Shown here: positions 18,562 to 53,595 of the stretch, piece by piece
Position numbering within the stretch: position 1 is the stretch's first letter
How the letters are laid out: each line of letters starts with the position of its first letter
Assembly (NCBI GenBank): GCA_030704615.1
Contig: CM060732.1
Location: 44,764,001 to 44,828,000 of the forward strand
Direction of reading: 5' to 3'
DNA from: Takakia lepidozioides
Lineage: Eukaryota > Plantae > Bryophyta
Length of the DNA stretch: 64,000 nt
Notes under the pieces: model-generated
Told to the model about the DNA's origin: nothing
The model's database searches: none
Seen by the model: only the letters and a program-made list of their open reading frames with translations
Translations under genes and position numbers: made by a program

Positions 18562-21523
18562 ATATCTGCAGTCACTGTAAATTTTGGTGTAAATAATCAA
18601 ATTTGACGGCACCGGCAAATGTCAACTCTCCTTGCCACAGCATTACTTTGCCTCTGCTGCACCTGTGCCAATGGCTGGCTCAATGGACGATCCTTAGATG
18701 CAATAGGATCTGCTGATGTAAGTATTACAGTTTAGTATTGAGTTCATTTGGTTCGAAATGTATGCAGGGATTCTGGGGGTGTACAGATTTATGGACATTT
18801 TGAGTCAGCTTCACAGCAGGCCTGTAATCTTTAAATGTATATTGTAATGCTGTAGTCATGAAGCTTCAGCCTATGTGGACTGATTGTTCCTGTGTTTGTC
18901 CATTGTGTTTCAGCCCCATCATGGTTAGTGTAGGCTGTAGGACATTCTCTTTCTTTTGCTGTGCTTTGTCAACCGGTCGATATTTTCCTGCTTTGATGTA
19001 AAAACTGGTCATGGAGAAACTTCCCCATGTAGCGAATTTGGGCACTTCCAAATGAGCATGGAGACTCTAGTTGTAGAATAGAGCAGTTGAGGCAGACGGG
19101 TTGTCCAACCTCAAGGACTTTATCATTTAATTGTTGCATACCTTGCTTGTTTGTGACAACAAATATAGGGATTTGCATATTATCACAAAGTTTGCCAAAA
19201 TCTGTCATAAAGTTAGGGAAGCTGTACCCCTGTTGCTGATTGCACACCCTATTTAGGGTGATTGGGAGTGACTTGTGATTCACAAGGAGAACACACACCC
19301 AATATCCCTTGATATATCCTCGTGTACATGCAGTAACCAGATTGAGATTCTTACTCTCTCAAGAATGCTCTATGGGACAGAACCAAAAACAATTGTTGAC
19401 CTTGGCTGAAGTGAGTGGAGAATGGTCGACTTGGCTGACAGCAAACTCCTCTCATGGGTTTTGAATTAGACCTGTGTGCTACAATGCCCTCTTGTGTTCC
19501 CCCAGCAATGAAGTCATGCTTGGATGACTTCACCCTCCAGTAGCTTGCCAACACAGTTGATAGTTGTTGGGCCAACTTCCATGTATCGGCAGTCGACCAA
19601 GTTGGCAGTAGATGACAAAAATGACAACTTGCTTCCATGCCTTAATTTTCGCTGGCGCCCAGATATCGGTGACTAACTTCGGTGAGTGCAATACCTAGGA
19701 ATTTGGAATGGGTTGGTATCGCGTGAGCACGGCCTGCGCATGAGCACAACCCACGGTCATGGGAGTTTTATGATTTTTTAACCTCGGTCATAGGAGTTCT
19801 ATATTTTCAGAATGGAATAAAACCATAAGCGGATATAGAGGATTGGTGCATTTATGCAGTACAACTTGCACCAATCCAGTGAGGCAAAACCTTCAGTAGT
19901 GTAGCCAGAAACCTTAAACCTATAGCGGTGGGCGGCGAGTTTCGCATTGAGAAATATTTGGTGATATGGGCACAAACCTAAGCAGTGGTGGGTTTCACAT
20001 TGAGGAAAGAGAACCTTAATAGAAAAAATATCGCAACAATTTCTTGCAACGAAAACAAAATAGTTGCAATTGATACAAAATACAATTCTAATGCTATTGA
20101 AATGTGATGCTAAATAGAACTCAAAAAATGTATTTGTTCCCTCGTCCGAAAATAACACCAACCACACAGTAAGTAGAAAATATAGCGATATTTGATTGAA
20201 ATGATTACAGGTTAATATAGACAAAATAACAAATGAGGATACTTTCGCTTACTGAAATTTTCTTTAGGAACGGAGTTAACATGTATATCTGTCATTTAAA
20301 TAATCAATAAAACCAAGATATTCCTTCTTGTGCCGTGAATTTTTAGCACAGAATCTGATAAGGTCTGAGATTGTTTCGCTTTGATAACATCAATGTTGAC
20401 AATTTTTAGTAATGAATTCAAAGATTGAAAAAGGTCATGCAGGTTTTTTAGCACAAACACTGTTAGAGAAGAGTTTCGTGTTGAGAAACTCTTTTGTTAT
20501 GACGATGCAATTCAAATCCGAACTTAGTCCATATCTCTCCATATTGGTTTAAAAACATGTAGGTTCTTTAACAAAAACACTGTCAAGGAGTAGTTTCGTG
20601 TTGAGAAACTCTTTGTTATGGCGATGCAATTTAAATCCCTTAGTCCATTTCCCTCCTTATTGGTTCCAAAGCATGCAGGTTTTTTAACCGAAACACTGTT
20701 AGAGAAGAGTTTTGTGTTGAGAAACTTTTTTATTTTGGCGATGCAATTCAAATCCCTCAGTCCATTTCTCTCCATATTGGTTTCAAAAGCATGGAGGTTT
20801 TTTAACAAAAACACTCTCAGAAAAGAGGTTCGTGTTGAGAAACTCTTGTGCAGGCAAATAAGTTCACATCCCTCAGTTCATATCCCGCCATATTGGTTAA
20901 AAAACATGCAGTCTTTTGTGCATGTTTTTGAACCAAAACAATGTTAGACGAGAGTTTCGTGTTGAGAAACTTTTTTGTCAAGGCGAAAAAGTTCAAATCC
21001 CTAAGTTAGTATCCCTCCTTATTGTTCCAAATTCATGCAGGTTTTTCAACAAAAACACTATTAGAGAAGAGTTTTGTGTTGAGAAACTCTTTTGCTACGT
21101 TGAACTAGTAGTTCATATCCCTGAGTTCATATCTCTCCCTATTGGTTCTAAAGCATGCAGATTCTTAAACCATAACATTGTCAGACAAACGTTTCGTGTT
21201 GAGAAACTTTTTTTTTATGGCAAATGAGTTCAATCCCTCGATCCGTATCCCTCCATATTGTTTCAAAAGTACGCAGATTTTTGTACACAACCACAGTCGG
21301 ATAAGAGTTTCGTGTTGAAAAACTCTTTTATTACGGCGAAATATTTCAAAGTTTTTAGTTCATATCCCTCCATAGACTGAGTGATTTAAATTGCTTCGCC
21401 ACAACAAAAAAAAATTCTCAACACGAAACTCTTCTTTGACAGTGTTTTTGTTCAAAAACATGTATGCTTTTGAACCAATATGGAAGGATATGGACTGAGG
21501 GATTTGAATTACTTCGTCATAAC

Positions 21524-22171
21524 TCTCACGGACATATCCCTGATAAACTTACCAGGAGTAAATACCAGAAGTTATCAAGTTACTATATTAGCAAAAGTTA
21601 TCGTGATGTACCATGATCTATCATGATTTATCATAAATTACCATTAGTTACTAAGTTACCGTGAGTTTATCAAATTATCGAGAGTAACTTGGGAAACTGG
21701 TCAGGAAGCTTCATTTGGAGAAAACTTCTCCATCAAGATACATTTTTTGCTTAAAGAAACTTCTCCATCAAGATACCTCATTTATTTAAGGAAACTTCTC
21801 CATCAAGCAATCTCCCTTGGGGAAGTTTCTTAAGGAACTTCCTAATACCCAGTATATATAGGAGGCGAAACTGGACACTCTTCAGTCTCGCCAACACAAG
21901 TTCAAGTTACTCTTGTCCCAAGTCCCAGTACTCCAGTCCGCTTCCAATACTCTAGTCCAGTTTCCAGTATCTGGTACCACAGTCCAGTTTCTAGCATTCC
22001 AGTATTCGAGTCGAGTTCCAGTATCTTGTACTCTTGTCCATTGTTATAAAGATTATCTTGTGTCATGTTTACCCATCATGCATTCGGCCACGCTTACCTT
22101 GACTTCTTGTCTAGTCTTGTACCTCTAGTCTGATATCTTGTTTGTGTTCAGTTACGTTCTCGTTCTTGACA
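21524..22171 (+). mobile_element. Solo LTR
   Basis: T(c/g)TCACGG...TTGACA termini, exact 5-bp TSD ATAAC (21519-21523 / 22172-22176), internal TATATATA at ~21853. Confidence 0.88.
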
Positions 22172-22380
22172 ATAACAAAAAAAATTCTCAACACGAAACT
22201 CTTTTCTAACAGTGTTTGTGCTCAAAAACCTACATGCTTCGGAACAAAGGTCCAATATGAAGGTATATGGACTGATGGATTTGAATTGCTTCGATATAAC
22301 AAAAGAGTTTCTCAACACGACTTTTCTCTCACAGTGTTTTTGTTAAAAAACCTACATGCTTTTGAACCAATATGGAAAGG

Positions 22381-22981
22381 TGTCAAGGACGAGAATATGA
22401 CTGAACACAAACAAGAGATCAGACTAGAGGTAAAGACTAGACAAGAAGTCAATGTCGGGCGTGTCGTATGCATGGTTGATAAACATGAATCAAAGATAAT
22501 CTTTATAACAATGGACAAGAGTACAAGATACTGGAACTCGACTTGAATACTGAAATGTTGGAAACTGGACTGGAGTACCAGATACTGGAAACTGGACTAG
22601 AGTACTTGAACTGGAAACAAGAGTAGTTTGAACTTGTGTTGACAAAATTGAAGTGTGTCCAGTCTCGTCTCCTATATATAACAGCTACTAAGAAGTTTCA
22701 TAAGAAGCTTTCCCAATGAAAGTTTCTTGACGGAGAAGTTTCCAAGGTTAAATAAAGGTTTCTTGATGGAGAAGTTTCCTTAAACAAATGAGGTATCTTA
22801 ATGGTGAAGTTTCCTCCAAATGAAGCTCCCGGAGTAGTTTTCCAAGTTACCCTCGGTAACTTGATAACTTATGGTAACTTATGGTAAATTATAGTAAATT
22901 ATGGTAACTTTTGGTAATATGGTCATTTGGTAACTTCTGGTATTTATTCCTAGTAAGTTCCTCTGGGCTATGTCCGTGACA
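22381..22981 (-). mobile_element. Solo LTR, same family as 21524-22171, opposite orientation
   Basis: TGTCA...TGACA termini; reverse-complement similarity to the first LTR along its length; degenerate TSD aaagg/gaggg. Confidence 0.85.
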
Positions 22982-23789
22982 GAGGGATATGGACTGAGAG
23001 ATTTGAATTGCTTTGTCATAACAAAAGAGTTTATCAACACGGAACTCTTCTCTAATAGTGTTTGTGCTCAAAAACCTACATGCTTCGGAACCAAGGTCCA
23101 ATATGGAGGGATATGGACTGAGGAATTTGAATTTGCTTCGCCACAACAAAAAAGTTTCTCAACTCGAAACTCTTCTTTGATAGTGTTTTTGTTCAAAACC
23201 CTGCATGCTTTTGAACCAATGTGGAGAGATATGGACTGAAGGATTTGAATTTTTTCGCCTTGACAAAAGAGTTTCTTAACACGAAACTCTTCTCTGACAG
23301 TGTTTTTGTTAAAAAACGTGCATGCTTTTGAACCAATATGGAGGGACATGGACTGAGGGATTTGAATTACTTCGCCATAACAAAAGAGTTTCTCAACACG
23401 AAATTCTTCTCTGACAATATTTTTGTTCAAAGACATGCATAGTTTTGAACCAATATGGAGGAATAGGGACGGAAAGATTTGAATTGTTTTGCCATAACAA
23501 AAAAGTTTCTTAACACGAAACTTTAATTTGACAATAATTGTGTTAGAAAAATCTGCATCATTTTGAATAAATATGAAGGGATATGAACTGAGGGATTTGA
23601 ACTCTTTGCCGTGACAGAAGAGGAGCTCAACACGAAACTCTACGGTGACATTGATTTTGTGATTCCTTGTGGATCAATAGCTACAATAAACCTGCATGGG
23701 TAGATGGTCAACTAAAGGCACGTTTAAAAAACAAGCCAAATGGGGGGCTCAAATAGTGTGCGGTGCCGCACATTGTTTGAGCTTCCAAT

Positions 23790-24240
23790 TCGGGGTGGCA
23801 AACGCACACAAACGTGATGTGGTCGGGCTTCACCCCTTCGCACATCATTTGCTCATAGATCTCTAAGGCCTCCATCCCGCACCTTTGTTGTGCATACCCT
23901 GCAAGTATGGCGTTCCACAACACCAAATCTCGTTCAGCTATAGTGTGGAAACTCCCTCCACATCCTCAATGCTCCCACATTTGGCATACATGTCCACTAG
24001 GGTGGTGTGCAAGATGACATCTGGTACAATTCCAGCTTTGACGATGCAAGCATGGACTTCTTTGCCCTTTTCCAGAGCTGCCAGGCTTGCACACGCACTG
24101 CAAACACACACAAACGTGATGTAGTCGGGCTTCACCCCTTCGCACATCATTTGCTCATAGGTCTCCGAAGCCTCCATCCCGCGCCCCTCCTGTGCATACC
24201 CTGCGTTGGGCAGTGTTCAGAATGACATCTGGTACAATTC
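23790..24240 (-). pseudogene. PLS-class PPR gene fragment captured inside element A
   Basis: P-L-S motifs: EQMMCEGVKPDYITFVCVCSACASLAALEKGKEVHACIVKAG..DVILHTTLVDMYAKCGSIED and VLWNAILAGYAQQ. Frameshifted and flanked by satellite units. Confidence 0.88.
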
Positions 24241-25178
24241 TCAAAACTTTTGTCTGAAAGTGTTTTTAGAAGGATTTGAACTGGTTGGCCGTAACAAAAG
24301 AGTATTTCAACACGAAACTCTTGTCTGACAGTGTATCTGTTAAAAAACAAGCATACTTTTGAGACAATGTGGAGGGATATTAATCGAGGGAATTGAATTG
24401 TTTTCCTGTAAGAAAAGAGTTTCTCAAGAAGAAATTCATGTATAACATTGTTCTTGTTCAAAAATTGGCATGCTGTTGAACCAATATTGAGAGATATCAA
24501 CTGGGGGATTTGAATTGTTTCGTCGTAACCAAAGAGTTTTTCAATACGAAACTCTTGTGTGACAGTGTATTTGTTCAAAATCATGTGCGATTTCTTTGGG
24601 CATCTCAAGAATATTTTTCATATTTTTCATGTTTGTGAACATCATAACTGCACGCTACCCAACCTCTCTTTAGGGATCAGAGTTTCGCACTGCAAATGCA
24701 TATCTCAATATATAATTGTACTAGTTGTTAGGGGAGAGAGTTTCGCTCTGCAAAAATATACATGGGTAGGGCCTTTGATAGTGACCTATTTATCTTTTCA
24801 GCTACAGTATGATTTCTTCTCAGACTGGTTGATATAGAGTTTCACCGTACGAAATTATCCATGGGTGATGATCTTAAATTTAAGGTTAGGCCTCACTGCC
24901 CACTCTCGTGCCTGTTATGAAAAGGGTCTGGTATCGTGTGAGCACAACGTGAGAAAAAACTACGCTTATAGGGTAACATGTTCATCATGTATAGGGGTTA
25001 CTTATTTTTTATGTATTAGTTTCGTAAAATTGTTAGTTTCGCCATTTCCGTTTTGTTGTGGAAGTTTCGCGGAAATTCGGGGAATATGCCCTTGTACTCA
25101 CGCGAGCGTGCTCACGCACTACCTAACCTCGGAATTTGGCGCCAGAGTTCATGGCCGATATCGGTAATCGCTTTTCAC

Positions 25179-27990: not shown

Positions 27991-28449
27991 TCAAGATCCC
28001 TTGCCGCCACTCATAGGCTTCTCAATTTCTACCTAGGTGCCACTGCCAACATGACTTTGCTTAATATAACACTAGAAGTTAACATAAGACAAGATTACAG
28101 ACTTCCGCTGACACGTAAAGAACTGGGCCACATTACCCTGGACAACACTAGGAATAAGCTAAGAACTTAATGCACACGTGTAATCTCTTACAAGAGGTAT
28201 GCTAGATCTTGGCATGTCAAATCTTCCCCACCCTCAAGAGTGACGTGGAACTAAAGAGAATGACTCTCAGTCCGGGTGACATGAAGGAGTGTAAACGTGT
28301 AAACTCCACTGCGGGTTACGGCGGGGGGTATTTACATGGAAGGGAGTATAACTCTACTTGGTGTAATTTACACTTGGTCTCGAAATTTGAGTAAGTGGCT
28401 AAATATAAATTGGACTAAGAGGAGTTATACACAAGACAAAATGGTGACA

Positions 28450-31400
28450 CTACCTAACAGCAGGTTGGGTGATGCTCTTTGAATACGATCGAATCTTGGC
28501 TACCGTGTCTGCAAAACTGTCACAAAGAAAATAGCTCTTTTGGAACCCATCCTTGTAGCTCATTTTTGGTAACTTGGAGAACGGATCAAGATCTTCAAAT
28601 ACAGGAAAATAATCCTCACTACCAGCCCTCATGTACATCAACTCTCCATAACTGGAAAGTAAACCAGCCCCAAAAGCCTTCACTTCATCTGCTTCTCTGA
28701 CTGTTCCAAACTCCACGGTGTACCAGTACAGCTTGGTAAGATGCCATATCTCTTTCTCTGATGCTCCAAGGGAAGCTGTACCTATCACAGAGGCCAATTC
28801 AGCAAACTCCTGATCGGCCAACATGGGAAGATGACCTAGAATCTCATGGTAGATGTCAGGCTCTGGTGTGTACATCGGATTACTCCCGTGCCAAATATAC
28901 TGTGTGGAATGGAAAGTGTGGAAAGCAAGACCATTTAAAAAATCCCTTGGGTGCAGTAAGCCAGCAACAGGTCTAATTGTCCATCCTGTACTGCTTTGCA
29001 ACACCTGCCAGACAATGAAAGATTTACAGAGATATATAGCTGATCAGTAGATGGACTATAAGTTGCTAAAGTTCTATACTTGCAGATTACCCAGAACTTA
29101 TGCTCCTAATCTTATGCCTATCTGACAGAGTTTAACTTACATCTATAACATAATTAGCTGGGCAGCTGGGATGGAGGAGAGATTTCTGGTTCCACTTGCA
29201 GTAGTACGTCAGCACCATTTTCTACAGGTATTTCAGGATTAGGTCCCAGCTCATTTAGATAGAAAGAGTTTATATACATGAGTACAGATCTATCATTACT
29301 ACAGCGTACCTATTCTGCACGCTAGATAGTAGAGAGAAGTCAGACAACATTTGATGCCAGCTGATCTCTATATTCTACTTATGGCCCATTCTCACCCATA
29401 GTGCACATGAGAAAAGTCAAATTGCTCCCAAATTCTGATCTCCTATAACTATAGCTGGATTCTAATATCATGGTAGCTCTCCAGTGAGGCTTATATTTCA
29501 TAACCTGCAATATGTTTGCCCAACTAAGGCCCCCGCCGCACCAGCCTGCTATCGCCTGCTACACTCTTACTAACTACAGCTACATAGAAAATTGCGGCCG
29601 CACTGACATGTTTAAAATGTTTTAGCCATAACTATAGTTATCTATCCTAAGAACTTCCTTCCTACTTTAGAGCAAATTTAGCACTACCCCCCCCCCCCCC
29701 TAGTGCTAAATCTAAACAGGCGTGCCGTTTTTGGGCAGCTGCCCGCGCCATTCTCTGCCATCGCCATTCCCATTCGCCATTTGCTTCTCATTCGCTCTTC
29801 CTTTCTCCTTCGCGCTCTCTTTTGGTTTTAGTTTCTCTTGCTTGAGTGCTCATGTTCCCCTCTCCTGCATTGCATCATGTCCACCACAACTACGACTTCA
29901 GAGAGGTCAGAGAGTGCAGCTGGTGAGGCGGTGGATTCGTATGCAGGTGAAGTACCTGCGACGCAGACTCATGATGTTGGGAGGAGACCTGGAAAGAGAC
30001 CACGACAGACCAATTGGTCTGAAAGTGAAATGCACTGGCTTGCCGTGGCCAAGAAAGATGAATGGCAGGCATGGAAGGAATCTTCTGCCCGGGGGAATAT
30101 GGTCGTGGACAGGGTCAAGTGGGAAAAGGTAGTTCGATTCTTGGAGAGCCACGGGGTGAGGGGCCGGGATGTGGTCAGCTGCACCAACAAATGGAATATG
30201 ATAGCAAAATTGTACAGAGATATCCGAGGACATCAGCTCCACGCGACAGGCAATCAGGATTAGTGGGGCATGGATGGCAAGGAGCGCGTAGCTCTAGGCC
30301 TTCCAAAGGCATTCACCAAGGAGCTGTACAGCGATATGGACTTTTTGGCGGAGCGAGCATGCAATGCTCCGCGAGCCACTTCGAGCAGCACGCACATGCA
30401 CATGCAGGTAATTTCTAATTTGCTTTGGTTGGCTCAGAATGCAGAAGTGGGAGCTGCCCAAATGCTGAATGAGGTGTTTTAGGTCTCCATGATAGTTCTA
30501 TGAGACGAAATTACCGTGCCAAAGTAGAGTGCGAATCTTGAGGGTCTCTTTGAATGGAAGATATGCATCTAACTCTCCTTCTCTGTCAACAGCATAGACA
30601 TCCTCCAACTCTAGTGCCCATTCCTACAATAAGCAACGACATAGTCACTACAAACTCCACACACCTCTGAGTAGTTCTTTTTGTTAATTGAACATACACA
30701 GGATACAAGCCCAATTTTATATACAAAACACTCTATTCTGTAGTGCTCATATACTGTGTTATGTGTAGATTACTATCAAAGTTTAAACATGGACCCCGTC
30801 ACAGGATTGTAGCCAGTTTCTACACTTGCAGAGGCTGCAAGCTCCAGGTACTTTGCATACAACAATGCCAGAACATTCAGGGCTAGACCCCCTGGAACCC
30901 TCATGGAATCGATATTCTAGCTGACCAGGAATTCAAATTTAAGTTCCATTTTCTGGGCTATCGTTGTTCACAATTTCTTAAGATACATACCGTGGTGGGT
31001 TGGCGCATGAGTTCTCATCAAATACTTGTTCACCAGCTCAAAGTCAGGGCTGTCATGAGGTAAATGAACAATATCACATTGCAACTTCTTGTAGTTTGCA
31101 TCCAAGGGGTCTTCTTCAGCGTCTTCCCCCCTTGAATTGATGAGCTCTGATGCTATTTCAATGTCCCGGAAAGCTTCTAGCATTTCAATCCGCCATCACA
31201 CTTCATGGTATTGAAACAAGATGCCTGGAAGCTGCAAACTTTCAAGGAATGGCTAAAGAACGTTTTGTATCTTCTATCTCAGAATTGTGTCTTACTCCTA
31301 CTGTCTTTTCTGCCAAGCTGACACCCTTCCTCTAGCCCTCCCCTTTCTCCCAGATTAATGAGCAGCGTACAAATTTCTTGCTCAAATCACCGCTCAGTAA

Positions 31401-34400
31401 TCCGGCATGTCTAGCTATCCTCCCCAATCATATCTCACATTGTCATTGGAAGTCAGCTATTTAGAAATGGAAGTGACTATCAATGACCTTATCTGTATAT
31501 GTGTCAATGTGTCTCTCTCCTATGACAATCAGGTATGGTCAAACCTTGGACTTAAGTATTTGCTCGGTGAAGATCAAAGTAGGATGAACAGTGGGTATGA
31601 ACGTGAAGAAACGATTGTTTGCATCCACCAGCAGCCCCGGGGGGTGCACTCCTCATTAAATGTACCAGCCACGTGCGTGCACAGGAGGGGGTATTTTAAA
31701 CCCCCCCATGTACAACATTATACATACAGAGGGGGGTTTAAAACACATTAAATATAATTTTACAGGAGGGGGTTGTTGAGTTTTTAGGGATAGTGTAGTG
31801 GTAAGAATGGCGATTCCGCCGCGATGCATCCCGGGATCGAATCGTGGAATCGTCGTTTTGTATGTTTGTTTATTTTTATTTTTCGCTCCACGATCTTTCT
31901 CCCCTGACCTCCCGCGGCTTTCTCTTTTCTTTCTCCTCCTCTCCCGCGTTCGCCTTCCCTTCCGCGGGCTTTCTCTTTTTCCTCCTCTCCTCTCCCCTCC
32001 TCTCCACAGGGCATGGTAGGACAATGTGGTGAGGGCACCAGAATGTGGCGAGGGCACTGACTTGGGAGAAGGTTTGCGGTTGTGATGTATGTAGAGGGCA
32101 GGAATCGAAGGGGATGAAGTAAGTGCGCGGGAATGTGGGGCAGGCCTGGGCTGATCGGTGATGATATGCGGGTGTGGTGGCGGATTGTTGTGCAGCAATG
32201 ACGGGAGGACATGGGCATCAAGATTCCCAGTCATCAGAGGTAATGAACACATTAGGCCTATTTTCTTTCCTAATAATGATTGGCGTGACACAATGGTTGT
32301 ACTCACTGTATCAGGCCTATTCTCATCCTTATTGAATCCAAACAGCCAGAGGGACAAGATGCCCCTAAGTGTACAGAACCTGAACGTCCTGAATCTGAAG
32401 GATTTGGTACTCAAGAGTTTACACAAGACGAGCAAAATCTACACATGGGGTAACTGTCCCCCTTTTGCAGAACGGTTGGGCGTCCAGGAGCAATCCCAAG
32501 CTACCTAGACGACAAACAATTCACATGCAAAGGGTTGGCTTGCGGCTGGCCACTTTCAACTTCTCAGGGCTTACTAACCAAAGGAAACAATTCGAAGTGG
32601 GACAAGTCCTCCGGACTAATGATATTCATATCTGTGCTGGGCAAGAAACATGGGAAACTTCGGATAAACTGGTTGGAGATGTCAATGGTTATAAATGGGC
32701 AGGTAGGATGTGTACTCTCAAGGCAGCCTCTGCCAAACGCGGTCAAAAAGGGGTTGGATTCTTTGTCCGTGATTTCTTGTTTGATAATTGTGAAATTATC
32801 AACAAGGGTTTGAGGTACGAACATAGTTTCTCGCTAAAACTGAATCTGAAGGGCGGCATGAGTACGAAGGACCTCTTTGTGGGTTGTGTTTACATGCCCA
32901 CAGAGGGGACCCTTAGTGCTGACGCAGACAAAGCCTTCGAAGATGTAAAGCTGGACTGTGCTTCGTTCCTTGCCAAAGGTCAGGTAGTGCTATTGGGTGA
33001 CTTCAATGCCCGGGTGGGCAAAGGGCTCCATCAGGATGATATCATTGGGCCTTTTGGTGAGGACGAGCCCTCTATAAAGAGTGCTGCAATTTGAAAACCA
33101 ACAGAGAATTGTGGGCGAGGTACTATCAGCTCCGGAAAGATATCAATCAGCTTGTTAGGTCTCAGAAGAAATTATACTGGGATAAGTTATACAGTGAAAT
33201 AAACTCAAACCACCATGGTGGTAATGACAAGAAATTATGGTTGGCCCTTCAACGTTTGTACAAGCCTAAAAACGGTCAGCAAGTACAAGCGCTGAAGACT
33301 ACTAAAGGTGCAGTGGTGACTTCATCGGTTGACATTGTCAAAACCTTTGAAAATCACTACAGTATCCTTCTAGGTCTAACAGTGAGGGGTCTTCTGCTGA
33401 ATGGAGGGACACAGTTGGAAAAATTGTTCCTATGATTCAAAACAGCCCTGATGAACTGGAGTATATTTCAATGGCTTATAACGCTCCCATTAGTTCTTCT
33501 GAGATTGTGGAAGCAATTGAACATTTAAATGGATATAAAGCTGGTGGACCTGATGGTATTGTCAACGAGCTTATCAAGCACGGTGGCGATCCCATGATAG
33601 AGGCCCTAGTTCTCCTCTTTAACCTTATCTGGAAGACTGAAATGATCCCCTTTCGCTGGCGACAGGGGGGTCATTGTCAGTCTATACAAGAAGGGTGACA
33701 GAGAAGAACCGGGGAACTACCGTGGCATCACACTCAGGAGTTGATTAATTGTGCGAAGAGATACTTTGATCTTTGGGGGCTAGAGGCTAATGTCAGCAAA
33801 TGTGCAGTGGTAGCATTCAACGACAGAGGAGAGGGAGGAAGTGATCTTAAGTGGCAGTGGGGTAGCCAAGAGATCCCGGTCCTCCCTTCCTACACTTACC
33901 TGGGCGTTGAGTTTTCCTCCAATTGTAATTGGGATGCACATATCCGGAAAGTTGTTCGAACTGGCAAGGGCAAAGCTCTGGGGCTCACTAAATTTTTCCC
34001 ACTGCAGAGGGGTCATCTCTGAGGTTAAGAAAACCATGCTTTGTCGCGTTATTAGACCTGGCTTGGAGTACGGATCTGCTATATGGGTTGATAACTCCAA
34101 CCAGGCTAAGTCTCTAGAATCCATTCAAGTGGGGGTGCTTAAGGAGTGTATGTCAGCATGCTCCAAAACAGCCAATGTGGCTGTTCGGGGTGAGTTTGGC
34201 ATTCCGTCCTTAAGCTCCCGACGAGATGAATTCAAGGTCAGATGGTGGGGTCAGCTGCAACATATGCCCAACACCAGATATCCTAAGTTGATTGACTCTA
34301 TATCTTGGAAACAGGACCGTCCTGTCAAACAGGCTAAGTCCTGGCAGAAGAGAGTAGAAAAGATTCTCAAGGACCTGGACCTGGATCCGCAAGTCTTGAC

Positions 34401-37400
34401 CCTGCTGGATAAATCTGCCTTAGAGGCTGTAGTGTCTGAGGCCATGTCTGTTGCCATGAGATTGTCTGATGAAAATGAAGTTAGGCAGAGAACTTCCCTG
34501 AACTTGTTTCCAGTCAGTGACATGGGGGTGGACATCTTGGATGACCTCAAGGGTCTACCCACTCTCGGCACTAGACTGAAATTTAAACTCAGGGCAGGAA
34601 GCCTACCTTTGAACAGCAAACAGAAGCAGAGAGGAAAGGGAGAGTGCAATTGTCCGTTGTGTGGGCAAACTGAAGACAGTATTCATTTTCTGATACGCTG
34701 TCCGGGTTCTCTCACCAAAGAGAGGCTCTCTTCAATTCTATCAAGGGAATTGTGCCCGTACCCCTGTTTACCAACTTTGAAAGTCTCGAGGCAGAGCCAA
34801 AAGCCCAGGCCCTCCTGAGGCCTAGCTTTTGGGCAAATCACACACAGCAGATTGATGCTTGTGTGAAGGGTTTTCTAGAGGATATCTGGAAAACCCGGAT
34901 TAATTCCTTATACGATGGTAAGTCTTACTACCAACGTCAGCCCTGTTCCTTTTGTTCCCACTGAAACTGGGCGCGGGGTCAATGGCCACAAGGCTACGGC
35001 AAACAACGTCTTATGAGTACAATCTCATCCTTATCATCCCTCGCCTTTTGGAAAATTCCAGCCATAATTGAAGGGCAATTGGTTGTTGTACTTAATTGCA
35101 CGAATGTTCCCCTTTCTGTTGGAATGAGCCGCACGTCCTTTCCATGCTGACATACCCTTTCTTCTTCCTGCAGGATCCTTTGGCCAGCCCTGTTATTTCT
35201 ATCATTTGTGCCATCCTCTTGGCGTTTCCACAGCCTCCCCTCATTGCCAGTGAAGTGTTTCTTTCTCTTCCCTTTGTCTTTAAAGACACTCCAACTGTTA
35301 GCTGCAGTACCCTTCGCTGATTTCTTATTACCTTTGACCTCATGTATGTTTTCAATCATGTTTGAAGGGTGATCACTTGCTGCCATATGCATGGAGGATG
35401 TTTTGAGCCAACCTTTGGATGATCATGCGGAAGAGGTAGTTGTTCAAAGTGAATTGAGACATACTCTGGATGCTGTCATTGATGAGTTTGAACAAGAGAA
35501 AGATGGATCGAAGGCAGTGGTTCCATTTGTCAAAGTAGACGGGAAGACCATATTCAAAAGCACTTTGGTTAGCCAACTCAATGGCAACCCTACTCTATCC
35601 AAGGATAGATTGACACGAGTAAGAAGTGCATCGATGTTGTTTTGCCGGGAAAACAAACCAACTACCAGCAACAAAGCCACGAGCTTGGGATTGGGTTCGG
35701 ATTGTGCTGTATTTTTTGTTGATGGGGAGACTGCGATCCAAACTACAAACAGGAAAGGTAGACCAGGGAAAACCTGCAGAGGAGCAACCAAAGGCACTTG
35801 GTATTTGGGCAGGGTTCAAAGAATGCGGAAGAAAATCAATAAGCGGTTTGTAGAATGTAGGGATTCTGTTGATTTATTGGAGCGTCCTTCTCATATGGAG
35901 ATTGGGTTAGCATGGTACCCAAAAATTCGAGGAGGGGTCTATACGTACGATTTGACGGATAACATGATGGTTGATTTGGATTCCATTATCGCGTTAGCAT
36001 GTTTAAAGTACAATGTCAAGTCAAACACATATGTTCTTGATGCAAATGACCGAAAAGTCTTTGACAACTTTATCAAAGGCAAATAATTTTTTAATTAATT
36101 TGTTAGATTTTATTATGTTTTAAATGAATAAATTCGATATAATATAAAAACATACATATACATATTGGAGGGTTATTTTTAATGATGAAAAATGAGAATA
36201 TACATACAGAAGGGGGTACTTTTCGAAAATTGTAAATTTTTGTATATTTACAGGAGGGGATTTTATAATCTTCAAAAAGTATGTACAGAGGGGGTATAAA
36301 TTATCCAAGGACCCGTATACAGGGGTTTTTTTTATTAGGCGACGAACGCACGTGATACGCACAGTTTATAAAGAGTGCACCCCCCGGGCCAGCAGCCCAT
36401 CCTTGTGTGCGTCGTGTTCAACATGTACCATGAGGTTTTGTATCTTTGTCAACACCTGATAACCTGCACACCAACAAAATTTAAAGACAGCCAACAGAGC
36501 ATTGCCTTTGTACAAGCCCCTTCTACAGAGAGAAAGTGGTCTCTAGAAGTGACAGTAGTGTTTGTCAGAGAATGAGTACTCATTCACACTGCCTCTGGGC
36601 ATTGACTCTGCCGTACCCAACTTGATGGGTTTGGGGGCAGTCTCCACACTGCTGGTGATCATGGCTTCAAACCTGTTTACACTTAACCCTTCAATGCTCA
36701 GTGCTTTTTGTTGGCTTCTAGCCCTGAGAGATGGAGAGAGATGGCGTGCCGTTGGTCATTGGCCCATGGAAGCGTTTGTTCGGAAGACCATTGAAGTCAC
36801 AACAAGTCAGAAGCTTTTCATTGCAAAATCCAGAGTAAATACTGGAGATTGTTCCATGTTGTCGGGGCTGGTTTGAATTCACAGTTGGCATTTCAAATGT
36901 ATACATCTTAGAGCAGGGGTGCAGAATGGGTGGGGGATTTACAGAATTAGGCTGCTATTCATTCCTTCCTCATGGCTAGCCAGTCATGTCTGTACTAAAT
37001 CTTTCTGCCATCCCAACTCTTGCTTTGTGTATAGGTTGGGTTTTGTAATTGCTTATAGCTCTGTGATTGGTAGCCAATAATCCACTGACTTATGGGTGCA
37101 CACTTTGGAGATTCCATCATTGTAGTGGTGTAGTTGTAGTGTTTTGTAGTTTGCAGTGTGCAACATGTCGTACTTCATTTTCAGGTCAGCCAGCAAGCAT
37201 GTCCACGGGGCCTTGCTTCTGTGATATCCTGAACCTTGGGTTTTCTTTTCAAGTGCTGTCATATTTACTGCACACCCTGCTCACAAGTTGCTGATGGTCT
37301 ACTAAATATGATGTTAGTGCTTAAATGCCTGTGTGGTGTGGTGGAGTGCTTCAATCCAAAGTTCGGTTACTCTTGGCCACTCTCTGCTCCACAGAGGGGA

Positions 37401-40400
37401 CACCCATAATTTGGGCTAAGCCTACGAGGGTGGTCTTTCTCTCTCTTACAATGTGTCTCCAAACTATCTTGTTGAAAGCTTTCCCCAGGCTACTATTAAC
37501 CTACCTCTTTCCGATAGTTTGCAGTTGGATCTTAAAGATATCAATAGTAATCCTCTCACAGAACCACTACTCTTACCTCTTCAAAGCCAACTCAACTGAC
37601 GACCTGACTGGGATGAGGATGCTCATTGAAAATGGAGAATTGCCTACCAAGGAGTGGCAGTTTTACTGGAAGTAAACATGAACAGCTTGTGGTCTCAAAC
37701 CTCACAATCTCTATGCCATAGCTACTGCAACAACAAAGCCAGTTTCCAAACATGGAATGGCAAAAGCAGCAGAGGTAACATTGTAACAAGACGTTAATTT
37801 TACTATAGTAATCTGGATTTGGTTCATAAATGGTAGTATTGAGAAGACCGTAGTAACCAGTGTTGGGCGATTCTCTGGTTTTGGGTAGAACCTGCAGGGT
37901 AGGTTCTATCTTGTGGAAGGTAAATAGAGAACCTCTGGGGCCGGGTACTTAAAAACATGGACAGTTAGAGAACCTGCGGTGCAGGGTATATCTCTGAGTT
38001 ACATTTTCACAGGTATGTTTTACACCGGTGCTCGGGTATATGGGTAGAGAACCGTATAGAGAACCGAGAGATGACCCGGTTCCGAGTCCTGGTTCCGAGT
38101 TCAAAAGTTATTATGAACAGAATAAATAAAAAATGTGCATGTATGAGATGGCCACAATTGTCAATAATTAAGCTCATTTTCTAGCACAACTAAGACTAAA
38201 CTTCCTCTAGATTGCAATGTTGGCCTGTTGGCATTCAGTTCTAGCATTTTCACTACCCTTCTTCTTCCTCAAGGCTTCCACGCTAACCTTAAATAACCGC
38301 CCTTATACCCAAGGTATGTGTCGGGTGCAGTTACCCTTACCCTCCCCTCTCATTCCAACTCGTAGGTCTATTAGAGAACCCCCGGTTCGGTGAAGTTCAC
38401 GGGTAAATAGATTTTGGTATCCGCCGGTTCAATCTTGACTAGGGTATTTGAAATTTTAATACCCGAGGTTAAGGGGGCATATACCCAGGTCCGGAACCGG
38501 CGGTTCTTTCACCCAAAACCAGAGAACCGCCCAGCACTGGTAGTAACCCCCAAGGAAGCTTTGACGGCAATACACCGTATTGTTGAAGGATGCAGCCATT
38601 GCTAGTTAATCCAGATACCTGCATATGTTCTCCATCCTCATTCACTTCAAAGAGAGGGAGAAGAATACATTGATTGTAGTCCCAGATATAGAGAAAGAAC
38701 AAAAGCTTTTAACAAACTCCATGGAATAGACGGCAAATATGACCAGTTGGCAAATGCCCTCCACTAAGAAGCCTACATAAAGAAGGTAAAGATGGCTTGT
38801 TGTCTATTGTCCATCTGTCAGTTTGTCCTTTCTATGTACGTGAGATCTCTCCTCTTTAAAGGATGTTCTTAACTCTAGACCACAGTAAGGGAAACAGGCA
38901 GACACCAAAAAGAATAAAAACAGCGGAGGCATGTGAAGCTTACCAGAAATTGCTAACAAAGGCATCTGTTACAGTGTTGGCCACTGTTATTTGCTCCACC
39001 TGCTTCACCAACCCAAGTGGTTGCCCAGAGTGCAGATCTTTGTTGTTTTCTCTGAAGTGCTAGGAAATTATGTTTCTCCTTATCCGAGTATGTTGAATTG
39101 AGAATCCTCTCCATCAGGTGAGGGGTAACTCCTATGGCATAGTGATATTGACAACACATAAGTGGAATACCAGAAGCATAATATTTCACCGTATTTATGT
39201 TCAGGTTACAAAGAAGAAATTGCAAGCTTTCAAATGATGCACCTCTACTATGGTGTAGGCACTTCATGCCTGCAGCGGAAAAATCAAAGAAAGATCTAAG
39301 AGTTGTGGTTTGCATGCTTCCAAGAACCAGTTCTAGTAACAAAGTCCTCCTATGCAGGTCCTACAACATTACAAGTGGCATATTGGACGTCAATGGGCTC
39401 TTATTTGGAGAACATTTTGTTGAAACATACTGACAGCTGATGTCATGACAGAGCTGGTATGTCTAACATTGCATCAGCATTTTGTTTCATGGCATACGGC
39501 TGCATATTTTATTTTTGAAACAACTTTTCCAACCACACAACACAAAAATTCCCTCCTAATATTCTCAGCAACGTTCAAAATGTGGAAAAAAGAATCAAAG
39601 GGAGTTGCCAACCTGGTCCAAGACTAAAAATGTGGCGGTGATAACATCAACAACACCAGGTCCTAAGGCGTTGAGAAATGCATCATACCACTGGGGGTTG
39701 AAAAATCCATCACGTACAACGACTAAGGGTTGTGGATACGTTCCCCTGTAGAGGGTGCTAATCACTTTGCGAAGCTCTTTCTAGTCTGCAGCGTACCGCT
39801 CTGCTGAAACGCTCGTTCAACGCCATCCCCACTCAGCTCATTCCCTACTCAAAACATATTGCACACTCATCAACCTCACTACTATCCCAAACATTGCCGC
39901 CTCCCACCAAACTTTCAAAGAGACTGAGCAACGACAACACCTTCATCTTTCAAAGAGAGACTGAGCATCCTTCATTTCAAAATGACCCACGACCTTCGGC
40001 TATGGCGTACAGGAAGGAGGAGAGCCGGGAGAAACGGCGAGCAAACGTGGCGAGGGAAAACGGGCACGGGCAGCGAACGATGCTTTAAAACTAAAACTTC
40101 GCGCTAACCTTTGTTATGGTAACTTTTTGGTGCAGCAGAGATAATTTTAGTTGGAGCAGCTGTTAGGAAAACGGGCCTGCTAAGCCGTTAGCAAGTGTTT
40201 AACGCTAGCAACCCGGTGCGGCGGGGGCCTAAGTCCTATAACTAAGTTTTTTTGGTTTTTTTCTCCTAACAGCGTTATCGATTATTCTGCATATATATGC
40301 TATGTCTTATGACAAAATTCTCTTGTTCTGTTGATATAAGAATGTTTCATGTAACTACAAAAAAGCGTCCACATGTATAGATTGTACTCATAAGACGTTG

Positions 40401-42988
40401 TTTGCCGTAGCCTTGTGGCCATTGACCCCGCGCCCAGTTTGAGCGGGAACAAAAGGGACAGAACCTACCTCTGTCAGGGGCTGGCGTTGGTAGTAAGACT
40501 TACCTTCAAGAGGGCCTGGGCTTTTGGCTCAGCCTTGAGACTTTCAAAGTTGGTAAACAGGGGTACAGGCACAATACCCTTAATAGATTTGAAGAGAGCG
40601 TCTCTTTGGTGAGAGAACCCCGGACAGTGTATCAGAAAATGAATACTGTCTTCAGATTGCCCACACAACGGGCAATTGCACTCTCCCTTTCCTCTCTGCT
40701 TCTGTTTGCTGTTCAAAGGTAGGCTTCCTGCCCTGAGTTTAAATTTCAGTCTAGTACCGAGAGTGGGTAGACCCTTGAGGTCATCCAAGATGTCCTCCCC
40801 CATGTATAGACTACCATTCAAACCAAAGTAGAAACGCACGAATTCCTTGAGCAAGAAAAACAGTTTTATAGTTTTAGTGTCAATCAGACACGAGCTCTAT
40901 CTGTGTCTTTTTTAGCACAGACACTTTACCAAGTGCTTGACTTAAGATCCATTTTTTCCTTCTTGATCCCAATGGTCAACTAACACTACAGTTGTACAGT
41001 GTGCACTTACCTCAGAAAGCTGTTGCAATTGTGGAACACTACTAGGGGTGAAGTTGAAAAGCCGATATGCCTTAAGGTACTCTTTGCACGCGTGAGTTGG
41101 GTAGAGATCTCTCAGAGTCCTCAACACATCACCCCATATGCGAGTCTCTCCTGCTGTATAGTGTACATCAGGAATTGGTTCACCCCTGCTAACCATGGCA
41201 CACCCACCCAAATAACTTCACGAGAATAGATGGGAGTTACCAGATACATTTCCTAAAGCTCAACTATCACGAAAGAATATTGCATGTTCAGCACTGGAAG
41301 GCTACACTGAAACTCCAGAGGGTTCTAGTTTCATTGCAACTAACTTTCCTCATGACTACCTAGTGTCATGTAAGCTCAAAAACCCCAGCAGTAGATTAAT
41401 GAATACAGGTTCTAGATGATATCAATTGCCTATAAGCTCTAGGACATAAAAGAACAATACCAGTTAGGTGATGGGTGATCAACCACTCGCTAGCTGTGTC
41501 CCTGTACAGTGTTATCAGCCAAAACATATCACAGAAAGAAGAATTATATAACTAGTAGACAACTTATAAGGAGCCAACAGTCATGTGCATAAAAGGCTCT
41601 TTAAGAGAGTAAGAGTCAGCTTATGTACATGGTGTGTGTCTTGGCCAAATCAACGATGTATGCCCGTCGCCTTTTGTACTCAACATCGTGGTAACCCTGT
41701 GAAATGTGATACGCTGTCATAAGCAACTTAATAAAAGGCCCAGAAATGAAATTTATGCTATTCCAAGAGGTTTTCCCTCCAGGTTTGGTACACTGACTAC
41801 GTGTACTAATTATGCATAAGAATGCTGCATGTAGGAAACTACCTGGGTTCCAATCTGATCATCTAGGAAAAATATCAATAAGTAGTCATAATTAATACAT
41901 AAATGTACAGTTTAGCTTCGAAGCGCTCTACTTATGATCCCCTCATCCTCCAAGGAACATTGGCCTGGCCTACTCCTAATATACTGGTTGACAATGCAGC
42001 AAGCTCCATATCAACACAGCAGACTGCTAGGTCACATTTGAGTTTTTCTGGGCCCAGAGAAGTGAAATGTGGAAGAATCAGACAGCCAACCGGATGGTCT
42101 TCGGCCAGGTTGGCACCGAACCCCAGAATATGATCTCCATTAGAAATGTCATGGATGGACCTTGGACTTTGAGGGAGCGTTGTACTAAAATCTTTACTAA
42201 CGTCTGCAACGGTCGATGCTGCACAACATCAGGTGCCATGAAAATAATGTGTTAGCACCTTCAGACCAGATCAATCCATGTTCATCGAAATAGAGGTCAA
42301 TTTAAACTTTCCGCAACCCTCCTGGTCCCAGTAGGCAAACAGGGGATTCCTTCCATGCTTCAACCACTTAAACTAATTCACGCTTCAAGTAAGAAGCGCG
42401 GCCAAAGATATATCTTCTAGCTGAAGTCAGGAGCATCAAAGCTTTGAAGTGATCATGGTCTGGAAGGAGGAGGTGGAGTTACCATCTATATATAGCTTCG
42501 TTTCTGGCCATACCATTCTAATATACCAAACCGCGCAACTGTTACTAAGTCCCAAGTCTCACTAGGTCAGGACTGGGCCTTCTTGTTCTCATACAACAGT
42601 GGATGCATGATTTGCTACCAATGGACACCTGGAATTGACATTCTCTCTGTTTTCATCAAAGGATAACGGCTGAAACAAAAAACACATACCATGTACAGGT
42701 GTAAGCCCCCATTCTCCTCCTTGTGTGCTGCGTGACCTTCCACCACCTTCAATCCTTTGCGATGGACCATGAACCAATAAATGGCGTCCTCTAGTCACTT
42801 GGACATTCAAATTTGATGCAAATATCTCTGGTTGTAGTGGTGCAGCCCGGAACTTTGAAGAAGACCACCTTACGACATTTGAAGAACCGCAGATCATAGA
42901 ACCAGAGGAGATAAGATCTGATGTCCATGTAGAGGCCGTGAGAATACTGGAGCCTTCCTGTGTGCTTGTTCCTGCACCCCAACTCCAT
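28450..42988 (-). CDS. PAH: Plant chloroplast-type phenylalanine hydroxylase (aromatic amino acid hydroxylase), possibly pseudogenising
   Basis: Phase-compatible exons: ~42988/42897-42690 (transit peptide); 42203-42091 (SIHDISNGDHILGFGANLAEDHP); 41696-41629 (GYHDVEYKRRR); 41185-41011 (YPTHACKEYL...PQLQQLSE); 29004-28450 (TGWTIRPVAGLL..FHSTQYI.H..YTPEPDI.HEILGH..YWYTVEFG..GAGLLSSYGE). Iron ligands His/His/Glu are present. Confidence 0.9.
29877..30407 (+). pseudogene. Myb/SANT (trihelix-like) DNA-binding ORF of the Harbinger element
   Basis: NWSESEMHWL...KWEKVVRFL...SCTNKWNMIAKLYRDIR...QD*WGMDGKERVALGLPKAF: spaced tryptophans with an in-frame TAG at 30261. Confidence 0.85.
32333..35022 (+). 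mobile_element. LINE (APE endonuclease + RT + C-terminal zinc finger), internally deleted
   Basis: APE motifs LATFN, GQETW, GVGFFV, VYMP, LLGDFNARVG; RT N-terminus KAGGPDGI, GNYRGITL; YTYLGV; CPLCG..ED..HFL..C. 12-bp TSD TCTCATCCTTAT (32321-32 / 35023-34). Confidence 0.92.
35391..36086 (+). CDS. 231-aa ORF, probable C-terminal remnant of the protein encoded by the CCCGGGGGG element
   Basis: Uninterrupted ORF ending ~300 bp from the right TIR and followed by an AT-rich 3' region; no domain recognised with certainty. Confidence 0.5.
   Translation: MEDVLSQPLDDHAEEVVVQSELRHTLDAVIDEFEQEKDGSKAVVPFVKVDGKTIFKSTLVSQLNGNPTLSKDRLTRVRSASMLFCRENKPTTSNKATSLGLGSDCAVFFVDGETAIQTTNRKGRPGKTCRGATKGTWYLGRVQRMRKKINKRFVECRDSVDLLERPSHMEIGLAWYPKIRGGVYTYDLTDNMMVDLDSIIALACLKYNVKSNTYVLDANDRKVFDNFIKGK
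37803..39845 (-). pseudogene. Captured GH79 heparanase-like / beta-glucuronidase fragment (three exons with introns)
   Basis: GNELSG...VSAERYAAD*KELRKVI...GFFNPQWY...GPGVVDVIT (39845-39615); HLMERILN...WVGEAGGANNSG..VTDAFVSNF (~39133-38944); YLD*LAMAASFNNTVYCRQSFLGG / GLLNTTIYEPNPDYY (38633-37803). Stops and frameshifts are present. Confidence 0.88.
37858..38539. mobile_element. hAT-type MITE inside the captured GH79 exon
   Basis: CAGTGTTGGGCGATTCTCTGGTTTTGGG ... CCCAAAACCAGAGAACCGCCCAGCACTG; exact 8-bp TSD GTAGTAAC; many agaacc subterminal motifs. Confidence 0.92.
40382..40800 (-). mobile_element. 5'-truncated copy of the same LINE family
   Basis: Near-identical to ~34525-35022 (DILDDLKGLPTLGTRLKFKLRAG) with an internal deletion; 10-bp TSD CATGTATAGA (40372-81 / 40801-10). 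Confidence 0.92.
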
Positions 42989-51970: not shown

Positions 51971-53595
51971 GAGTACAGGTGTCTCCAGTGGTGGTTTCTA
52001 TGGGTGACATGTGTGGGGAAAGCTTCTAGAAGGGTCCATCCAAACTTTAAGAAGAAAAACTTGAAGATCCTCATGTGCGCGTGTGTATTGTATTACTGTA
52101 CTGGCATGAGTTTTAGAGGGAAGATGAGCAATAATATACAAGGGAATAATCCCCAAGGATGTACCTAGTCTTGACAGTAAGCAGCAATACCTGCGTGATT
52201 CCTCTGACATTCGGACATAGCCCACATGAATTGGGCAACAGAGTATGTATAACGAAGCGACCCAAAATGGATCGCTCCTGCATATAGGTAGAGGTTGAAG
52301 TATGGCTGACGGCTTGCATGGAGTGCCTATTTTTTGAAAGCGCACATGCACATCACTGCACTAGAAGTGTTCTCTTTTTAGACTTCTGACATGGCCAGAT
52401 TCTTTTTTTAAAAGGAAGACAGATTCTTACACTTTGAATTATTATAAATAAATACATCATACACTTAAGTGTTTGAAAAGTGGTCGGATTTGACCTCTGG
52501 ACCTTTGTTGAAGCCTCGGGTCATCAAGCTTAGTACCTAGACGTTGAGAAAGAAAGAATAAAGAAAGCAAGAAAGAAGAGAAGAAAACAGAGATGGGCAG
52601 TGAGGGTGGCAGCTACGGTACTTAGAAAAATTCAAAGCGGAAGAGTGAACAAGGAGGTGGGTGGGAACGTGTGAGAAGGTGCTCCACGCTGCAGACTCAA
52701 GACTTTAGTTTGAAATGCAGGACAGCTTGCCCAGTCTTTAGGGACTAGAACCTCCCATCCTACCGACACGTTTGTTATCCCCGCCACACAAATTGCATGA
52801 AAGTGGAAGGGACTGAGAAGCTTGCGTGCTACAATACCCACATGACGGAAGTGTGACACAGGCAGCTCAGGACTATAAGACCCACATCATGGAAAAAACT
52901 TCTTCCCGATCCTCGGGCCTCACAACGGACACATTCTACTCGTCAGGTTTTTGGTAGTTCGGCTCTGTTTCCAGTTTCCACCGGGGCTCATCTACTTCGC
53001 TTCTGCTTTTGTGTATTTTGATTTGGGGGCTGGTGCTAGTATCCCCGCTGTGGTTTCCGGAGCTGTACATGGCAATTGAGCTTTGTGGGCAGTGTTCTTG
53101 ATTGGGATCCGAGCCAGTTCTGAGAGTTCTGGTTTCTGTTATTGGGTTGCGGTGTGCAGCTGAGTGTTTGCACTCTTGATTCAGTTCAGGACATGTTGAG
53201 GTAGGAGGGGGCACTGCGAGGTTCGCAGTTTGCCGTGCATGAGGTAGTAAACCTGGGAAGAGAGATGTTTCTGAAGTTCGAGTTCTGTTGGGGTTGTGGT
53301 CACAATCGGCAGAGTCGTGTCTGTGCTCTTTATTTAGTTGCATACGTATGCGCGAGGCCGGGAGCAGTGGGATATGGACTTTTGAGTGAGGCGTAGAGAT
53401 GTTTCTATTTTCGGTTGCGTTCCGTTTTGGTGAAAGGAGTCGGTACACGGGTTATTTGAGGCCTATGCGAGATGGGGCATAGTGGAGGGGAAGGGTGTGG
53501 ATGCTGAGAAAAACCTCACTTTCTGGAGGGAGACGACAAAGTTGTATCGTTTGAGCAAAGGTGTAACGGAAAAAAGGTTTCCGAAGGGGGTGACG

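Follow-up and report, generated by a model that had tools for sequence, protein, structure and literature searches.

The window analysed here is a 64,000-nucleotide stretch of the Takakia lepidozioides genome (assembly GCA_030704615.1, contig CM060732.1, positions 44,764,001 to 44,828,000, forward strand). It holds part of a minus-strand gene for an aromatic amino-acid hydroxylase (PAH), and in a ~12-kb intron of this gene, between two consecutive exons, lies an element of 10.7 kb (29528-40229; all positions are those of the window). The element is bounded by a perfect 15-bp terminal inverted repeat (TIR), GGCCCCCGCCGCACC, found at 29528-29542 and as its reverse complement at 40215-40229, with the trinucleotide TAA directly outside each copy as target-site duplication (TSD). 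Its interior contains one exon of a Myb/SANT-like open reading frame (ORF), here called ORF1, and pieces of two host genes, PARP1 and a GH79 gene. The observation itself, an element of this form with this cargo, is confirmed. We consider that it is probably a non-autonomous cut-and-paste PIF/Harbinger DNA transposon resembling the 'Pack-PIF' elements, which measured ~5.25 kb before two later insertions. Its boundary features were the following.

29525-29527, no strand: left TAA target-site duplication, from the sequence; 29525 is also where the alignment of a second family member, in RNA contigs, begins
29528-29542, plus strand: left 15-bp TIR, from the sequence and from a repeat boundary in contig depth
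29543-29831, plus strand: left subterminal region, common to many family members (summed depth 1285-2237 vs 64 in the flank)
39849-40214, minus strand: right subterminal region, from its inverted alignment with the left end beyond the TIR
40215-40229, minus strand: right 15-bp TIR, from the sequence
40230-40232, no strand: right TAA target-site duplication, from the sequence

The similarity of the TIRs extended imperfectly to 32 nt, and the two ends were alike in inverted orientation, again imperfectly, for ~270 bp past the TIR. The motif CGCCATT occurs three times at 29746-29781 in the left subterminal region, and no further match to the TIR with at most three mismatches was found between both ends. 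Block-shuffled windows served as the null model. A perfect 15-bp inverted pair within 12 kb was not rare alone, with 0.9 expected per shuffled window; the additional demand for equal 3-bp flanks lowered the expectation to 0.02, and a pair with TAA/TTA flanks appeared in none of 100 shuffles. The sequence check and the shuffles agreed with the sequence-only reading, which had described a perfect 15-bp TIR and a TAA TSD enclosing 10.7 kb. The TIR is short, as in PIF/Harbinger elements (about 14-50 bp), and TAA, with TTA the usual duplication of PIF elements (PMC2528002, PMC8903248), was found on both sides of this element and at a second insertion of the family.

This second insertion was found among Logan contigs of four sequencing runs, which were aligned to positions 28400-31700: a DNA run of the source sample (X1), a run from another study labelled plant metagenome (X5), and two RNA runs (X6 and X7). 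Summed depth counts all contigs at least 80% alike to the window. Where unique sequence enters a repeat, a contig is expected to stop about k-1 bases in. The X1 contig of the flank (28400-29556; depth 64.3, 0 differences) ended about k-1 bases into the TIR, and the summed X1 depth, 64 in every flank bin, rose ~30-fold to 2034 in the bin from 29510. It was 2034-2237 over 29510-29731 and 1285 over 29732-29842, fell to 427-685 in the Myb ORF and to 360-386 in the PARP intron (30620-30952), and stood at 140-228 from there to 31618. In the RNA contigs (X6 and X7), another family member matched the window from exactly 29525 to 29781 with ~92% identity and a different preceding flank. Because the depth jumps at the TIR and a second insertion has another flank, the left boundary is a true terminus that has been used at more than one TAA site, and other copies do exist, without which the family proposed in the sequence-only reading would have fallen. 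This 257-bp left end (29525-29781) lies within a 1206-nt RNA contig whose depth was 330 (X6) and 37 (X7), which places a Harbinger end in a well-expressed transcript elsewhere in the genome.

The interior was also repeated. Near-identical X1 contigs had a depth of 290 over ORF1 (29752-30197) and 284.5 over a PARP exon and intron (30565-30750), the bin across the junction had 278, and both sides of the junction stood at ~4.4 times the single-copy level. From the equal depth, ORF1 and cargo would be linked in all copies. In terms of copy number as applied to Pack-TYPE elements, the left end, ORF1 and the PARP cargo were at ~4-5 times the depth of the single-copy flank, as read from contigs rather than locus by locus. 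The deeper interior had ~1.5-2 times the single-copy depth, and the copies may vary in extent. Moreover, X5 held pieces of the element, including PARP cargo at 30927-31077 with 2 differences in 151 bases; since these pieces come from an independent study, the structure is not an assembly artefact. In public metagenome contigs, 27 loci with a TWA flank and the TIR were considered and set aside as chance, none being further alike to the element by blastn.

Next to the left subterminal region lies the ORF1 exon.

29832-30407, plus strand: Myb/SANT-like ORF1 exon, with an in-frame TAG at 30261-30263 and a probable splice donor, CAG/GTAATT, at ~30408

The frame of ORF1 runs on past this single TAG. 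An RNA contig ~91% identical over 29859-30400 has C and not G at position 30263, giving TAC, and a class of DNA contigs with a depth of 167.5 of 370 also has TAC there; by contig depth, ~3 copy-equivalents carry TAG. From the open codon in the transcribed ~91% relative it follows that a related lineage with an open ORF1 codon exists and is transcribed, the lineage of the present copy having TAG. This suggests that the Pack subfamily was amplified after ORF1 had been inactivated, and hence was mobilised in trans. Homology to the related transcript stops at 30400, beside the CAG/GTAATT site, where the first exon of ORF1 seems to end. An Atlas feature search placed ORF1 among Myb/SANT clusters (0.93, 185 shared features), a PDB search gave no match, and a single-sequence AlphaFold model was too poor to be used (pLDDT 46.8). 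The Myb/SANT ORF that the sequence-only reading placed in the 10.7 kb thus has a weak Pfam match and the Atlas result in its favour; that reading had been made without the in-frame TAG at 30261. It also held that host gene pieces stand where a DDE transposase would be expected. We found no match to DDE_Tnp_4 or Plant_tran in any ORF piece scanned in this copy, which agrees with that description. A non-autonomous member need not encode a transposase, and an interior bounded by TIR and TSD but free of transposase is what characterizes Pack-TYPE elements.

The PARP1 part of the cargo follows the ORF1 exon across a junction zone.

30408-30513, no strand: ORF1/PARP junction zone containing the breakpoint; homology to the Myb transcript reaches 30400, homology to the PARP mRNA starts at 30514
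30514-30624, minus strand: PARP1 exon, first part of the catalytic domain as far as LLWH; parent mRNA with 6 differences in 111, Pfam PARP E 1e-4, open frame
30995-31189, minus strand: PARP1 exon, passing from the end of the regulatory into the start of the catalytic domain; parent mRNA with 7 differences in 195, human PARP1 E 7.5e-14
31545-31635, minus strand: 3' half of a PARP1 exon, regulatory domain; parent mRNA with 5 differences in 93, cut by a nested element
36397-36463, minus strand: remaining 5' half of that PARP1 exon, regulatory domain; an intact acceptor (tgtgcag) stands before it, and it matches the continuation of the parent mRNA

Pfam matches to PARP_reg and to the PARP catalytic domain were obtained in the minus-strand cargo. 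A spliced RNA contig of the parent gene (3388 nt; 1328 nt in X7) set the exons at 30514-30624, 30995-31189 and 31545-31637; the parent mRNA skips 370 and 355 nt between them and has 18 differences in 399 exon bases. Beyond 31637 its sequence picks up again in the window at 36399, and therefore the split exon resumes at 36397-36463. The PARP1 cargo consists of three parental exons seen as four minus-strand blocks, each open in one frame. They start midway through the regulatory domain and reach as far as LLWH, where the catalytic domain begins. No more PARP exons were found beyond 36463 when minus-strand pieces of 36369-36954 were searched against Pfam and PDB. Human PARP1 and PARP2 matched the middle exon (30995-31189) about equally (E 7.5e-14); the length of the RNA contig and the position of the match would fit a PARP1-sized gene (~1000 amino acids) rather than PARP2. 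Besides the near-identical contigs, X1 contains one over 30542-30750 with 14 differences and a single-copy depth of 64.5, which carries the variants of the mRNA at 30572 and 30590 and reaches into the intron, and a similar diverged contig covers 31374-31631. The contig with a depth of 64.5 is taken to be the parent PARP1 gene including its intron. The parent was single-copy, expressed and ~95% identical to the cargo, the exon and intron matches being ~93-96%. Because parent and cargo have intron DNA in common, the capture took place at the DNA level. The intron-containing, minus-strand PARP1 fragment noticed from the sequence was thus recovered by Pfam, by the match to human PARP1/2 and by the spliced RNA contig of the parent. 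It probably cannot encode an active enzyme, as the captured sequence breaks off at the catalytic-triad His.

The GH79 part lies at the other end, beside the right subterminal region.

39637-39848, minus strand: GH79 exon i, Pfam Glyco_hydro_79n E 5e-10 and tblastn
38916-39147, minus strand: GH79 exon ii, Pfam Glyco_hydro_79n E 4e-12; tblastn in two frames, with a frameshift near 38974
38548-38617, minus strand: 5' half of GH79 exon iii, tblastn
37806-37849, minus strand: 3' half of GH79 exon iii (GYYGLLNTTIYEPNPDYY), tblastn
36464-37805, no strand: stretch between the cargo pieces, 1.3 kb without assignable coding match and with none to PARP or GH79

Query proteins were obtained with phmmer, which returned GH79 proteins from 1.84 billion representatives, and were then used in a local tblastn. 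Amino acids ~225-405 of a 543-residue GH79 protein (P0007) fell on three minus-strand exons, while neither the first 225 residues nor the last ~140 gave a tblastn match. Pfam Glyco_hydro_79n had independently matched two minus-strand pieces (E 5e-10 and 4e-12), and both methods agree with the intron-containing, minus-strand GH79 fragment of the sequence-only reading. An internal third of the protein with a frameshift presumably cannot encode an active enzyme. The simplest reading of the stretch between the two cargo pieces is intron DNA of the parents, with the GH79/PARP junction somewhere in it. Two candidates in this stretch were rejected: a third cargo gene similar to DUF846/TVP23 (37448-37672, plus strand; Pfam E 1.3e-3) was supported neither by a homologue search nor by Atlas features, and 36546-36954 as a GH79 C-terminus was ruled out by tblastn. 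In the terms used for Pack-TYPE elements, homology to host exons inside the element was found for PARP1, with exons and introns, and for GH79, with three exons.

About half of the present length was added later. Two nested insertions, which are newly recognised here and were absent from the first reading, make up 5.4 of the 10.7 kb, and the earlier element of ~5.25 kb included ~3.9 kb of cargo.

31636-36388, no strand: nested TIR element of 4753 bp, with a 16-bp TIR CCCGGGGGGTGCACTC and an 8-bp TSD CCAGCAGC at 31628-31635 and 36389-36396
37858-38539, no strand: hAT-like miniature inverted-repeat transposable element (MITE) of 682 bp, with an 8-bp TSD GTAGTAAC at 37850-37857 and 38540-38547, splitting GH79 exon iii

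The larger nested element arrived after the capture, because the parent mRNA crosses its site in the PARP exon uninterrupted. At its terminus the summed X1 depth was 52189 vs 64 for single-copy sequence, and by this depth its ends occur in many hundreds of family copies. It holds a 5'-truncated long interspersed nuclear element (LINE) at ~32400-35025 on the plus strand, whose endonuclease was matched by Pfam Exo_endo_phos, and an ORF of 231 amino acids (35391-36086, plus strand) without Pfam match. A second LINE copy at 40379-40805 lies in the PAH intron outside the Harbinger-type element; the 3' parts of the two copies (32400-35025 and 40379-40805) are 93-97% alike in opposite orientation, and both end in ...GAGTACAATCT without a poly(A) run. 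The TIRs of the hAT-like MITE are 30 bp long and start with CAGTG.

These features can be arranged into one history. The element would have kept its two 15-bp TIRs together with the subterminal regions and exon 1 of a Myb-like ORF1, and the remaining coding region, including any transposase, would have been replaced by ~3.9 kb of genomic cargo from GH79 and PARP1, both of which stand on the strand opposite ORF1. This cargo may have been copied at the DNA level when gap repair switched templates, or neighbouring insertions may have fused, the latter being an alternative model of acquisition (PMC8903248, PMC13317346). To bring in two unlinked internal gene fragments would take either two events or one repair event with template switching. 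Mobilisation of PIF/Harbinger elements requires both ORF1 and transposase (PMC2836001); a Pack subfamily carrying the TAG could have been amplified in trans, with both proteins supplied by the related, ~91% identical and transcribed lineage whose ORF1 is open. The order of events would be capture (~5% divergence from the PARP1 parent), loss of ORF1, amplification to a few near-identical copies, and the two insertions. The present copy would have landed at a TAA in the PAH intron and been hit later by the abundant element with the 8-bp TSD in its PARP exon and by the hAT-like MITE in its GH79 exon. The sequence-only reading had spoken of a gene-shuffling Harbinger family. The multi-copy nature was seen (left end ~30-fold, Myb and PARP regions together ~4-5-fold), and carriage of cargo by the family was seen for PARP only.

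Several results weigh against this interpretation. No PIF-type DDE transposase was found linked to these TIRs, and because none is tied to these ends the superfamily is assigned from TSD, TIR and ORF1 only; the PIF/Harbinger call of the sequence-only reading stands on the TSD, the TIR and the Myb match, and to that extent was overstated. That Myb match is weak, the frame 29832-30260 (plus strand) reaching Pfam Myb_DNA-bind_4 at E 6e-4 and 20.6 bits vs a 27-bit cut-off, and neither a word-indexed protein search nor an exact-product look-up returned a homologue of ORF1. The read evidence covers the left part (28400-31700) and so bears on the left end, ORF1 and the PARP cargo. At position 31477, every X1 contig has 13 extra bases (TATCAATGACCGT or ...CAT) relative to the window; therefore window and X1 run differ locally, through a small deletion in the assembly or through variation among individuals. 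No empty site was observed. Finally, the depths would correspond to about 4-5 near-identical genomic copies linking ORF1 to PARP cargo, with the warning of the tool itself that the k-mer depth of contigs is not copy number. An internal control, 64.3 for the flank vs 64.5 for the contig of the parent PARP1, supports, without proving, the use of depth as copy number.

The same results bear on three other explanations. The absence of a transposase match from the scanned ORF pieces, together with the weak Myb score and the missing homologues, would also be expected of a mobile TIR element of another or undescribed superfamily, in which the Myb/SANT ORF would be a captured fragment of a host trihelix gene. 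The TIR counts for such an element too: it consists of G and C only, and its likeness to Tourist/PIF ends such as those of mPing is presumably limited to the first four bases. We nevertheless regard this as unlikely. A TAA duplication at two independent insertions, a short TIR and a Myb-like ORF near the end together form the signature of PIF/Harbinger elements (PMC2528002, PMC2836001), for whose members mPing, Ping and Pong the terminal 15 bases are taken as TIR (PMC9921582), and the ORF1 region is multi-copy and transcribed in a related lineage, as expected of a transposon gene. It is also conceivable that the inverted repeat is coincidental or belongs to two small elements, so that intron DNA with pseudogene fragments is seen and the 10.7 kb never moved as a unit. 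Such a perfect pair is indeed expected nearly once per shuffled window, and the reads cover the left end and not the right. Yet the flanking trinucleotides make the coincidence very improbable (0.02 with equal flanks and 0/100 with TWA flanks), the boundary of the repeat, as given by the reads, falls on the TIR, no copy of the TIR lies further in, and the interior beside the left end, including the PARP intron, is ~4-6-fold repeated vs the single-copy flank.

A passenger transposon, for example a Helitron or another foreign element that carried the genes and inserted into the Harbinger before amplification, would explain the cargo in a different way. Two other transposons did insert into the Harbinger-type element, and the breakpoints are placed only to zones (30408-30513, within 36464-37805, and ~39849). 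Helitrons are recognised by a 5' TC, a 3' hairpin with CTRR and no TSD, and Mutator-like elements (MULEs) by long TIRs with a TSD of 9-11 bp. No such Helitron-like or MULE-like termini or TSD were present at the borders of the cargo, by eye and by repeat search, no dedicated Helitron scan having been made. The two transposon insertions that were found interrupt cargo exons rather than bound the cargo, and the separate Helitron or MULE ends that could have undone the sequence-only reading were not found. Together with the equal depth across the ORF1/PARP junction (290, 278, 284.5), this makes a passenger element a poor explanation, in our view quite unlikely. A PIF/Harbinger transposon similar to the Pack-PIF elements is the explanation that we prefer.

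The host gene of the insertion is defined by two exons.

28453-29004, minus strand: PAH exon covering Biopterin_H positions 116-291 (Pfam E 1.6e-67), downstream of the intron that holds the element
40945-41211, minus strand: PAH exon covering Biopterin_H positions 52-121 (Pfam E 3.9e-14), upstream of that intron

Only ~0.8 kb of the ~12-kb intron belongs neither to the Harbinger-type element nor to the LINE fragment at 40379-40805; in annotation, the 12-kb PAH intron should be read as ~0.8 kb of original sequence, the rest being transposons. Within 28400-29509, neither RNA run yielded a contig that matched the PAH exon, although PARP1 and transposon transcripts did match. PAH may be weakly expressed in these samples, or impaired by its 12-kb intron. 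Elsewhere in the window we noted a ~350-nt inverted repeat (6612-6957 and 15936-16302; 88-92% complementary, arms 9 kb apart), whose arms are possibly the ends of another large TIR element. At 20376-24685 there are tandem repeats of ~117-120 bp in two facing inverted blocks within an AT-rich stretch (GC 0.35-0.39), and 53482-55041 (plus strand) holds an ORF of 519 amino acids without Pfam match.

For annotation it also follows that the PARP and GH79 exons at this locus are pseudogene cargo and not genes. Lying in the same orientation, the PARP1 and GH79 pieces might conceivably give rise to chimeric transcripts, or to small RNAs directed at the expressed parent gene of PARP1. A further-reaching idea, that the genome holds an active Harbinger lineage which captures host gene fragments unusually often and at kilobase scale, seems doubtful to us; if true, the uptake of DNA by PIF/Harbinger elements could be studied in a seed-free plant as a natural system. 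The general understanding of gene capture is unchanged by this element. It is a well-bounded case of a probable PIF/Harbinger element that has duplicated several exons each from unrelated genes, much as is known of MULEs, CACTAs and Helitrons.

The rarity of gene capture by Harbingers, on which the sequence-only reading had laid weight, was not borne out by published cases. In grapevine, PIF elements were shown in 2008 to hold captured sequence of up to 3.5 kb, exons and introns included (PMC2528002); Gisby and Catoni described Pack-PIF families in maize and rice in 2022 (PMC8903248), and a Harbinger with two captured coding sequences is known from Caenorhabditis elegans (PMC2572040). A literature search found no description of such elements in bryophytes or ferns; the term 'Pack-Harbinger' was not found in it, and 'Pack-PIF' in a single paper. 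The present element is a further case of a known type, notable for the size of its cargo, its retained ORF1 exon and its host lineage. It is like Pifvine-3 (Benjak et al. 2008, PMC2528002) in its PIF-type ends, its TAA/TTA duplication and its kilobase-scale host sequence with exons and introns in several copies. However, Pifvine-3 keeps ORF1 and transposase and carries its cargo in a long 5' region, whereas here the cargo stands in place of the transposase and the host is a seed-free plant. Pack-PIF elements are likewise non-autonomous, mostly flanked by TTA/TAA, without transposase and with an interior from host genes, and they form small to large copy clusters (PMC8903248). Zm-Pack-PIF cluster 18 averages ~0.5 kb with 58-163 bp of gene sequence, in contrast to ~5.25 kb here before the nested insertions; the present element also differs from this published example in carrying several exons from each of two genes and in retaining an exon of ORF1. 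Turmoil-1 of C. elegans (PMC2572040) is also an element of the Harbinger superfamily with fragments of two unrelated protein-coding genes, but it is an animal element with a transposase, and its captured pieces lie within terminal repeats of 760 bp. With the Pack-MULEs and Pack-CACTAs of flowering plants, the Takakia element has in common the DNA-level, intron-containing capture from several genes followed by amplification. Those elements differ from it in their duplications of 9-11 bp, or of 3 bp other than TWA, and in their long MULE TIRs or CACTA ends, none of which was seen here, where a perfect 15-bp TIR and TAA enclose the cargo.

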